64,000 nt of DNA from NCBI RefSeq assembly GCF_002571385.2, contig NW_019217806.1, positions 580,562 to 644,561 on the forward strand, given 5' to 3'. Source of the DNA: Stylophora pistillata (Eukaryota). Made by a program: the position numbers and the translations under genes. Below are positions 57,001-62,316 of the stretch, one piece after another. The number at the start of each line of letters is the position of its first letter. The stretch's first letter is position 1. The notes beneath the pieces are model-generated. The model was not told the DNA's origin, made no database searches, and worked only from the letters and a program-made list of their open reading frames with translations.

Positions 57001-60000
57001 TAAGATGAATATGCAGATTCTTAAGCCTCACGGACTCTCGCTCACAGATTTAGAAATGGTAATTTTGAGTAAGGACTTTTTTTTAAGGCGGCGAGGTGGG
57101 GGGGAAGCCAGGGCCTCGTTTTTGGATAGTGTTGGTCATGTTTATGATCGAGATCGAGGTATCAAAAGGTTTGGAATTCAAACAATAAAGGTAGCAGGAA
57201 ATGAAATAAAATATAGTGATCTAGGAGCCAAAACCTGCTCTGCTCTTCCTTAGACTGGGATTTAAAGAGAGGTTTCGGACCCTTGAATTTGCCTGGACTT
57301 TTGGAGAAACAGGCCGTGTCCATTCAAATAAGGGTCATAAAATTAGCGCAATTGTCATGTCGATACAAACTAGTTTGTAAGGTGATGTTATATTGCTATA
57401 CTGATATTAAAGGCTGAGTCTTTTCAAGCACATTATTGTGCGAATTTGCACTGTATTTATGCTTTGTAAATTTACGGCTAGGGACGAATTGGGCCAGAGG
57501 GCGAATATGGTGACCGAGTAAGTGTTCAATCTGTTTTTTTTTTTTACCTAGTTACATAAAGTTAGAATCACTCGAAAGATCTATCTTGGAGTCAATTTAT
57601 CACTCAACGCCATTCTACATCACTTTTTCTTTTGTAAACCGCACAAATTTAAACATTTGAACGTTTCCTTTTTCACGTGCTACATGAAGTGTTTTTCTTA
57701 AATTCGAAAAAATTAGTCCTCACCTCACATTTCTGTCACCTCGAGCCACAAACTTTGTTTCCACAAAACGTAAAATATGGTGGATCTTCATTTTAAAACT
57801 CGTGCAAAATTTTGATGCTTAACGGTATCTTCCATCTTCTGATTACATCAATTTAGCGGCTTGGGGGGAATCGATAATCAGCAAGAAAAAATTGAAGAGA
57901 AATAACGCCTTGTTTAGTGACTGCATAGATTTGTTAATATAACAGAGTGATAATTTTTTTTCTGTGTTTTTCCTCAGGGACCAAGAGGACCTGCTGTAAG
58001 TCCACCCCTCACACTAAGTAGGAGTCAAAGATCATTTCTATAATATGGTGATGGTCCAGAGACTTCACAACATACCTTTGTACTGGACTTTTACAGCCTT
58101 CAATCACTTTTTTCGGCCTCTATTTTACGTTGTTAACCTTATGACTGAAAAGGAACGTTTTAATTTGGTTTGTGAAGTTAATAAATCTGAGATAGGCCAT
58201 TTGGACTTTATATTCTGTGTCATGCATTTCTCGATCCTTTCATCATCCTTCCATCAATCGATCCATTTTCCGTACCTTGGACTGATCGTTTGCCCCATCG
58301 GTCGTTCGTTCTCTAAACTATTCACTTAGTACTGTTTCGTTTTTCATGAAAAGAGAGATTTTTAAGTAAAACGTGTCAAGTAATACGTGATTTTGGTTTC
58401 TTTAACTTTCTAGGGGGATCAGGGACTTCCGGTATGTTCTATTCCACAATTTATTGTTATCCTTAGTGGTATTTTCTTTATACTCTTTCCAGTTTTTTGT
58501 TGTTTTTGCGCTCTTTCTGATGCTTTAAATCATTTGTTGTTGTACACAGGGTGACCCAGGCCCACCTGGTCCGCCTGGCGAGAAGGTATGTAATATGTGC
58601 CAATACGTACATATGTGATCCCACTATTTTAGAGTCGAAAGAGACCGTAAGTGAAAGTGCTCTTCCACGGTTTCTCAATCGTGAAACGATAGATAATGTT
58701 AATTGAACTGAGTGGAGTGCAGTTTGAACCAAAATCACACGAGTGATTTAAAAATCGAACTACATCCATTTTGAAATCGCAAAATTCAGTCCCTTAACAT
58801 CGTGATAAATTAATCTGTACACACATTTTATTGATCCAGAACGCAGCTGGTTTGTAATTTGAAAAGTTGCAAAAGTTGTCTTTCGTTTTAATCTAATTTG
58901 TTTGGTTTCTTTAAAATTTTATGGCTGGTTGTGTTTTAGGAAAGGTTTTTCATTGGCTGGGGAAATATGCGATTTACACCTGGTTTAAGATTAATATATG
59001 AAGGTAGTGGTGAATATGAACGATGATGACATTTTTTTGATACCTTGTCCTCTGAATTTGCAGGGGCCTCCAGGGCAATATTTCTACCCGCAGCCGGTAT
59101 GTTAATGGTATCTTTCACAGCTGTCATTTTTGCTCGTGACACGGCACGCTTTTGAGGGGGGGGGGGTAGCGAGCTGAAATGAGAACTGCAAGGAGTCTAG
59201 CAGGTCAACTTAGAAAGTTAATAGGGAACGAGAATCGGGACAGTGGAAAGCTACAGGATTAATTAACTGTGGTAGAAGTACAAAAAAACTTTCGGAAACG
59301 GTGAAAAACATAATATAAAAATTACAGTAAAACCTCCCTAGTTTCCATCTTCTCTTTGTTTCAGTTAGACTATTTCGAGAAGAGTATTCCTTAAGATAAA
59401 GAAAGTCTATTTTGAAATGTGCTATATTTGCTCAGGTTAGGATGAAAACGAAAGATGTATGAATGACAGTTGAAATTCACTTTTTATGTTCCCTTTAAAC
59501 TTTAAATCGTTCATGAAAACGTTCATATTTAAAAGAAAAAGAACGACACTGCAGTTTTTGATGGGAGCTTCCTGAACGCGGTTGACAGTCAGATCCAAAA
59601 TTCCTACAAAAAACAGACCTCCTTTTTCTTAACATTTGTCTCATATATTTTAGCCTGGTATTTCCACCGGAGGGAACAAGAAAGGTCCATTCTCCAATCG
59701 TCGGCTTTACTCGAGTAACCAGGTAACTTAATTATTCAATTCTTTTGTTTGCTTGATTCAGATGCAGTGGAACTTATTGTTTTAGATACACCTGTACAAA
59801 AAGTTATACAAAAATTAGTTTCTACTGAAAAAAAAGGTTGTCCTGTCGGCTTTGTATCTGTTAAAAGGCTGATAGTTTCTAAAGAAACTGTTTGGGGCTG
59901 CGTCAGTGGGGGTAACGAAATAATTTGGATATATCAACAAAGTTGAAATGGTAAACTGGCCACCGTAACGATTACAAAAGCTAAAGCTAAATCGTTACGG

Positions 60001-62316: not shown

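Follow-up and report, generated by a model that had tools for sequence, protein, structure and literature searches.

The 64 000-nucleotide stretch of the Stylophora pistillata genome analysed here (RefSeq assembly GCF_002571385.2, contig NW_019217806.1, positions 580,562 to 644,561, hereafter the window) carries at 59851-60056 a 180-nt two-armed insertion derived from the 3' tail of a Penelope-like element (PLE), one arm of which begins at the predicted cleavage site of a minimal hammerhead ribozyme. The insertion is bracketed by a direct 13-bp target-site duplication (TSD), TTTGTATCTGTTA, whose left copy (59851-59863) and right copy (60044-60056) are identical at 13/13 positions. Between them lie a long arm on the minus strand (59864-59982, 119 nt), an AAAGCT stutter (59983-59988), in which the final six bases of the long-arm cDNA are repeated, and a short inverted arm on the plus strand (59989-60043, 55 nt). 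When aligned with a natural full copy of the element (L007, to which all positions of three or four digits given for the element refer), the long arm corresponds to 1657-1775 with 117/119 identities and the short arm to 1665-1719 with 54/55; as the sole mismatch of the short arm is its first base, its effective start is 1666. The long arm begins AGCTTTTGTAATCG; its element sequence opens with the base that immediately follows the hammerhead GUC and closes at the 'tail' 3' end. The outer end of the short arm lies at the family's 'no-tail' 3' end, and both outer ends of the mini-insertion coincide with the two usual 3' ends of the family. In the longer family member of the window the long-arm sequence runs from 17720 onward (aligned 17720-17839), directly 3' of GAAACGTC (17712-17719), and since base 59983 (A) differs from the base expected for a copy that read on into the ribozyme, the breakpoint of the long arm is exact. 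The ribozyme itself is absent from the mini-insertion, whose start is the predicted cut. A 28-base stretch of the element occurred four times in the window and in none of 100 shuffles. The original prediction, made from the letters of the window alone, had described the 13-bp TSD, the long arm, the AAAGCT stutter and the inverted arm, and all were found at the coordinates given above; its claim that the copy stops at the first base 3' of the GUC triplet is borne out by the alignments to both L007 and the longer member. Inner ends aside, 59851-60056 has the classic form of a PLE scar, with the 3' tail of the element inserted in the usual two-armed manner.

The longer family member is likewise a two-armed insertion (16820-17860), recognised from inverted repeats (I1-I3), from its sequence and from matches to other copies. 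Its 13-bp TSD, GCAATACCTGTAA, occupies 16820-16832 and 17848-17860 and encloses a 710-nt minus-strand arm ending at the no-tail site (16833-17542) and a 305-nt plus-strand arm ending with the tail (17543-17847); both window insertions therefore share the layout of two arms and one tail. A native 21-bp hairpin is present in this copy at 17464-17539. A match to the hammerhead motif lies at 17689-17722 on the plus strand, with the cut predicted after 17719. It reads GCU-CCGACGA-A-GGGC-UAAC-GCUC-GAA-ACGU-C, with helix I formed by GCT/AGC and helix II by GGGC-TAAC-GCTC; a palindromic ACGU, followed by C17, replaces helix III, and the cleavage triplet is GUC. The minimum free energy fold of the monomer includes the helix I and helix II pairs, and a minimal, dimer-type hammerhead of this kind is known from Penelope-like elements by the account given in Cervera 2014. 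The CCGACGA core, with C at position 4 (C4), was found in 33 of the 57 motif matches among the examined loci, and CUG-core variants are common among older copies and among arms starting at 1623. Copies with U4 (CUGACGA) make up about 10% of the RNA reads at position 1630; since single CpG-decay variants of the second CpG are far fewer, a lineage with U4 probably exists alongside the young C4 lineages.

Judged from its sequence, the source of these insertions is an abundant, recently active PLE of the endonuclease-bearing (EN+) type. The 28-base arm stretch had at least 7,536 matches with at most one mismatch in the 398-Mb genome, compared with 0 for a reversed control. Natural copies, examined over their last ~1.8 kb, continue upstream into an open reading frame whose last 152 codons hold a GIY-YIG domain (L007:1073-1528; PF01541, E 3.4e-5, 24.5 bits against a cut-off of 22.6) and which ends about 95 nt before the hammerhead motif in L007. 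These copies diverge by about 4% or less, with two identical across 848 nt. The TSDs vary in length, being 13 bp at both window insertions and 7-15 bp at 11 other loci. Two young subfamilies, recognised by the tail markers ACCCCC..TTTAGAAAC and ACTCCC..TTTCGAAAC, both have the C4 core. An identity as a hammerhead retrozyme was rejected for the mini-insertion, as the locus is a single inverted-arm pair that lacks both a tandem array and a ribozyme; nor was any circular RNA seen.

The usual layout of the family was assessed in 35 distinct arms from the first 30 anchors on contig C1 (L031-L060), a sample which we regard as unbiased and whose arm ends, taken from x-drop extension, may be off by a few bases. 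The 3' ends fell at 1716-1722 in 15/35 arms and at 1773-1781 in 19/35, with one arm running into a gap. Among the 11 head-to-head pairs in the sample the tail was present on one arm only in eight and on both arms in two, the remaining pair being affected by a gap. The two clusters of 3' ends and the one-tail pairs fit the description of PLE insertions in Craig 2021, with an optional 'tail' at one end and an inverted 5'-truncated copy beside the main copy, as well as the findings set out in Frangieh 2024, in which two adjacent internal reverse transcriptase (RT) start sites bracket the tail and both target strands are cleaved in vitro. The 5' starts were distributed differently, with 19 at the main hot spot of 1622-1633, one at 1657, its partner at 1662, and 14 scattered over 841-1556. 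As the sampled arms start mostly upstream of the motif, most cDNAs pass straight through the predicted cut. Many arms starting at 1623 adjoin unrelated DNA, with loose ends at 1623 and 1626, and the hot spot could be explained by a transcription start in a terminal repeat, by an RT stop, or by a UUCG/CGAA inverted repeat; PLE transcripts are described in a review as starting inside the upstream repeat.

Starts of 5'-truncated arms at and near the cut site were then counted per base across the genome, using a 21-place pattern in which 18 element bases, with CpG written as YR, are preceded by three codes that rule out the bases expected upstream. Reversed-pattern controls gave 0-3 matches per base. 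These patterns replaced shorter ones, of which a degenerate control pattern at 1661 had too much background (197 matches, with 82 for its own control) and a control at 1652 was uninformative (13 against 11), the latter being superseded by palindrome counts and by base 1653. The three-base exclusion misses junctions whose upstream bases match by chance, and the cut-site classes HVC and GVD lie outside the counts. The cut-site base, 1657, had 40 starts, while its neighbours had 20 at 1653 (about nine of them CTT|CG joins to the partner arm of the main hot spot), 9 at 1655, 5 at 1656, 22 at 1658, 10 at 1659, 28 at 1660 (14 being GCT|TTTT expansions of a T-run) and 7 at 1664. Against the mean of these seven neighbours the 40 starts have a Poisson probability of ~2e-8, and against the highest raw neighbour P = 0.02. 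A breakpoint peak at GTC^AGC had been set beforehand as the test of the original prediction; the sharp local peak was indeed found, but the class which forms it is small, at about 1% of copies.

The contexts of these junctions were classified by eye. All 40 rows at 1657 were covered with at least 19 upstream bases or as loci, and the rows at 1653, 1655, 1660 and 1664, together with the 13 of the second family described below, were judged from printed triplets alone. Curation left 38 true starts at 1657, the other two rows being single-base indels in continuous copies. The largest class, with 14 rows (8 loci), has an AGCT palindrome at the junction and a partner arm that also ends at the cut site. 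Eight rows show an AGC overlap, the complement of helix I, with a partner arm ending at 1623-1628, and three show an AAAAGC overlap with a partner ending near 1514; six are simple insertions with TSDs and seven are other partner junctions. A second filter (HTD), which includes the window copy, returned 27 rows, of which 22 were examined: seven loci of the window type, with a partner from 1666, five simple insertions with TSDs and one without a clear TSD, in addition to four cases of substitution noise, one chance match and four others. At base 1658, 14 of the 22 rows were examined and gave about nine true ends (four simple), four internal deletions and one case of noise; the 10 rows at 1659 gave about seven true ends, two of them simple, and four of the five rows at 1656 yielded about one simple insertion. 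The curated contrast is therefore 38 at 1657 against roughly 5-9 at the three adjacent bases. Loci L124, L125, L132, L134 and L138 are internal same-strand deletions rejoined at 1658-1659 via GC overlaps, the stretch deleted being 1536-1657 in L124 and L125 and about 1641-1657 in L132 and L134, and this points to template slippage within one RNA.

The junction seen in the window, in which 1657 is joined to a partner from 1666, was found at seven loci including the window, at least four of which have direct TSDs of their own. Across both filters, 11 simple insertions start from 1657, with TSDs of 7-15 bp and, in three, no filler. The stutter of the window copy restarts at the cut-site base; at L075 a 29-nt unit (1657-1685) has been copied twice, each copy starting from that base, and at L109 two arms both ending there are separated by 18 foreign bases. 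To judge from their junctions, the window stutter, L075, L109 and the simple insertions look like the products of a real cDNA terminus at the cut-site base. Repeated restarts are not peculiar to that base, since at L149 (G000:C166:197227-197485) an 18-nt unit beginning at C17, one base before the cut, stands in two tandem copies beside an inverted arm. A hairpin 'master' copy that spread the 1657/1666 junction was considered and rejected, as in the TSD-flanked loci the outer end of the partner is the standard no-tail 3' end. It had also been claimed that an RNA of ~120 nt suffices for insertion, and arms of 64-125 nt with their own TSDs do start at the cut site in 11 loci; a cleavage-product-sized RNA is thus enough, whatever made its end.

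Palindromes and a second family served as controls for sequence effects at the site. Perfect palindromic junctions, with at most one mismatch, were found at six loci for AGCT at the cut site and at one locus each for ACGT, five bases upstream, and GGCC, 21 bases downstream (P = 0.02 for six against one and one). A second Penelope family (L030) has the canonical CUGAUGA core and a 3' product that starts with the non-palindromic AGTC, and its starts numbered 1, 8 and 4 at positions -1, 0 and +1 of the cut site, the same step as in the first family. Within L030:2560-2960 is a head-to-head pair of this family, the junction of which is a long stutter of CATCATCAGAGTCAAGTGA-like units. In the second family AGTCACT stands immediately ahead of helix I and again immediately behind the cut, and arms in L030 also start just upstream of the ribozyme.

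The observations establish how the insertion is built, to which family it belongs, where the two 3' ends lie and that 5' ends peak locally at this base in two families. The best reading of them, which we hold tentatively, is that of rare self-cleavage in vivo, followed by run-off of the polymerase, stutter and end-to-end joining with a twin cDNA. What we infer here is twin priming and template jumping and, most of all, that the end was made by a cut in the RNA and not by a stop of the polymerase. The element endonuclease would nick both target strands 13 bp apart, and each 3' end so exposed would prime cDNA synthesis, from the tail site to give the long arm and from the no-tail site, ~57 nt upstream, to give the short arm. 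The long-arm cDNA would stop opposite A1.1, the first nucleotide after GUC, most probably because the C4 minimal hammerhead, a weak ribozyme working as a dimer, with help from protein, or both, had severed the RNA template at that point, an event that would befall about 1% of templates. A single round of re-copying at the exposed 3' terminus of this cDNA (...AAAAGCT) would leave the AAAGCT stutter, and the re-copied end would be fused end-to-end to the second cDNA, whose synthesis had got as far as 1666. A bolder extension is that a dimeric ribozyme tethers two template RNAs, which would explain both why the elements insert in back-to-back arms and why these arms mostly meet just past the ribozyme.

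Several observations weigh against self-cleavage as the source of these ends. Read-through copies, which have GTC ahead of the 18 element places, total 4,961 compared with the 40 starts, or ~58 when the second filter is included, so that cut-site starts make up only ~0.8-1.2% of the copies that reach the region and at least 98.8% of arms read through; the second family is similar, with 1,368 read-through copies against 8 starts, a share of 0.6% as compared to 0.8% in the C4 family. The element thus multiplies almost entirely from uncut RNA. The main hot spot at 1622-1633 lies at the 5' edge of the hammerhead motif, 25-35 nt upstream of the cut, and base 1623 alone has 584 starts genome-wide, some rows of which may be a subfamily's native sequence. 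Simple insertions counted with the first filter peak only weakly, at six for 1657 as against about one, four and two for 1656, 1658 and 1659. The motif departs from the conserved hammerhead core CUGANGA, reading CCGACGA with one extra A before helix II; in favour of cleavage, Perreault 2011 reports that a U4C hammerhead loses much of its activity in vitro but keeps enough in vivo for viroid infectivity. No hammerhead reached the Rfam gathering score in the window, where the three matches were all tRNA, and none was found at E values up to 10 when the Rfam models were run on 17500-17900, where the three matches were to other families; no Rfam match is expected for a motif without helix III. In Anolis, as presented in Frangieh 2024, ribozyme mutants left in vitro insertion unchanged and no RNA-seq reads began at the cut site. 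Nor was a pile-up of RNA molecule ends found at the cut site of the coral element in one raw RNA-seq run (X24, 18,472 reads placed), which was analysed with three contig sets on the natural copy. RNA coverage was about equal on both strands with a stepwise rise that tracks genomic copy number, and loose ends were located, before the element sequence, at 1623 and 1626 and, behind it, at 1719 and 1776-1781. As coverage of this two-stranded, copy-number-like kind indicates reads mostly from dead copies in host transcripts, or from DNA, the RNA reads give no support for cleavage and yet are compatible with a 1% event, being weak in both directions.

A rival explanation requires no cut at all, and in it the RT stalls at, or leaves the template at, the 3' border of a folded, dimeric or protein-bound hammerhead and the peak arises from template switching. 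The nascent ...AAAAGCT end would pair with another cDNA through the AGCT palindrome, through AGC, reverse-complementary to the 5' strand of helix I, or through GCTTTT, which recurs near 1514. Such switching would account for the 25 of the 38 curated cut-site starts that are junctions with 3-6-nt overlaps and that form the bulk of the excess, a further point against self-cleavage, and overlap junctions are common elsewhere in the element, as with CTT|CG at 1653 (about 9/20), GC at 1658 and UUCG/CGAA at the main hot spot. The absence of piled-up RNA ends and the similar shares in the C4 and canonical-core families also fit it. However, pairing through a palindrome does not readily explain why AGCT has six loci when the two other nearby 4-nt palindromes have one each, or why the second family shows the same step from a non-palindromic AGTC. 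It is also at odds with the 11 simple insertions and with the joins without overlap from the exact base (the seven loci of the 1666-partner class, L109 and L075), and if the RT stalled before helix III, the stop should fall one base further along. We therefore regard template switching without a cut as an unlikely explanation, though one to be taken seriously.

Another account is coincidence, the window copy being a 5'-truncated arm of the ordinary kind whose end falls on the cut-site base by chance. With 5-28 starts at each neighbouring base, about a quarter of the cut-site starts are expected from background (a mean of 11-14 against 40). But the site had been named beforehand by the ribozyme model, the peak at it is significant, the window stutter restarts at the same base and the copy belongs to a recurrent class of seven loci; chance is accordingly rather improbable as the explanation. 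That the inverted structure was made by a later rearrangement or an assembly fold-back rather than by insertion is highly improbable. The related locus L092 (G000:C24:1234550-1234790) does show inverted symmetry through both arms and well into the host flanks, centred on a 9-nt loop from the cut-site base, and could have arisen by fold-back duplication or through faulty assembly instead of by normal insertion. The window copy, in contrast, has a direct 13-bp TSD, unrelated flanks and outer ends at the two standard 3' ends of the family.

Self-cleavage in vivo at a low rate is thus compatible with the data and mildly favoured by them. The proposal that the RT ran off the 5' end of a self-cleaved RNA gains mildly from the local peak and is weakened by the ~1% share, by the overlap junctions and by the RNA reads. 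The stronger statement of the original prediction, that the copy is genomic evidence of cleavage in vivo, goes beyond results which are compatible with cleavage and mildly favour it, and in which the overlaps and the missing RNA ends weigh against it. More broadly, it is conceivable, albeit doubtful, that PLE minimal hammerheads, including the U4C variant, cut RNA in coral cells in about 1% of reverse-transcribed templates, and that genomic 5' junctions preserve a quantitative fossil record of it. Craig 2021 describes the function of PLE hammerheads as 'still unclear', and our literature search found no published cut-site breakpoint analysis for Penelope-like elements. If the cleavage reading is true, the peak that genomic 5' ends form at the scissile bond of two families would be the first in-vivo trace of PLE hammerhead cleavage, its frequency would be given a number, rare at about 1%, and the role of these ribozymes would become directly testable.

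Elsewhere in the window, Rfam tRNA matches of 37.6-44.4 bits mark three tRNA-like genes, two of which lie inverted and 150 nt apart at 24353-24425 (minus strand) and 24577-24649 (plus strand), the third being at 4136-4209 (plus strand).

The two-armed structure invites comparison with the twin priming of LINE-1, in which both nicked strands prime on the element RNA to give head-to-head arms joined at short overlaps. In LINE-1, however, the second strand primes wherever the target overhang happens to find a match, whereas in the coral element the second priming site is fixed at one of its own RT start sites (8/11 pairs). The closest likeness is to canonical EN+ PLEs of the Penelope/Poseidon type, which share the C-terminal GIY-YIG domain, the hammerhead motif near the 3' end and the heavy 5' truncation. 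The adjoining inverted 5'-truncated copy with a tail at one end, as described in Craig 2021, and the two tail-bracketing RT starts set out in Frangieh 2024 extend this likeness. The coral family differs in that its two 3' ends lie ~57-60 nt apart rather than 30-40, in its C4 core, and in that the window copy is without the ribozyme.

The nearest precedent for reading a position of self-cleavage from genomic 5' junctions is provided by R2 elements, as presented in Eickbush 2013. In that account a hepatitis delta virus (HDV)-like ribozyme sets the RNA's 5' end, and the cDNA end is the site of end-to-end template jumps and of joins through microhomology. The R2 ribozyme, however, lies at the 5' end and processes essentially every template, while that of the coral element is a motif of the 3' tail, at which no more than ~1% of copies end. 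The hammerhead retrozymes of metazoans, finally, are found in the same host group, corals, and are small hammerhead-bearing retroelements thought to use PLE machinery; for Acropora millepora, Cervera 2020 reports over 6,000 type I motifs, which fall into 16 families and are mostly minimal PLE-like variants. Retrozymes are nevertheless tandem repeats of 170-450 bp with efficient canonical ribozymes and circular RNAs, whereas the window insertion is a single two-armed fragment from the tail of an autonomous element.

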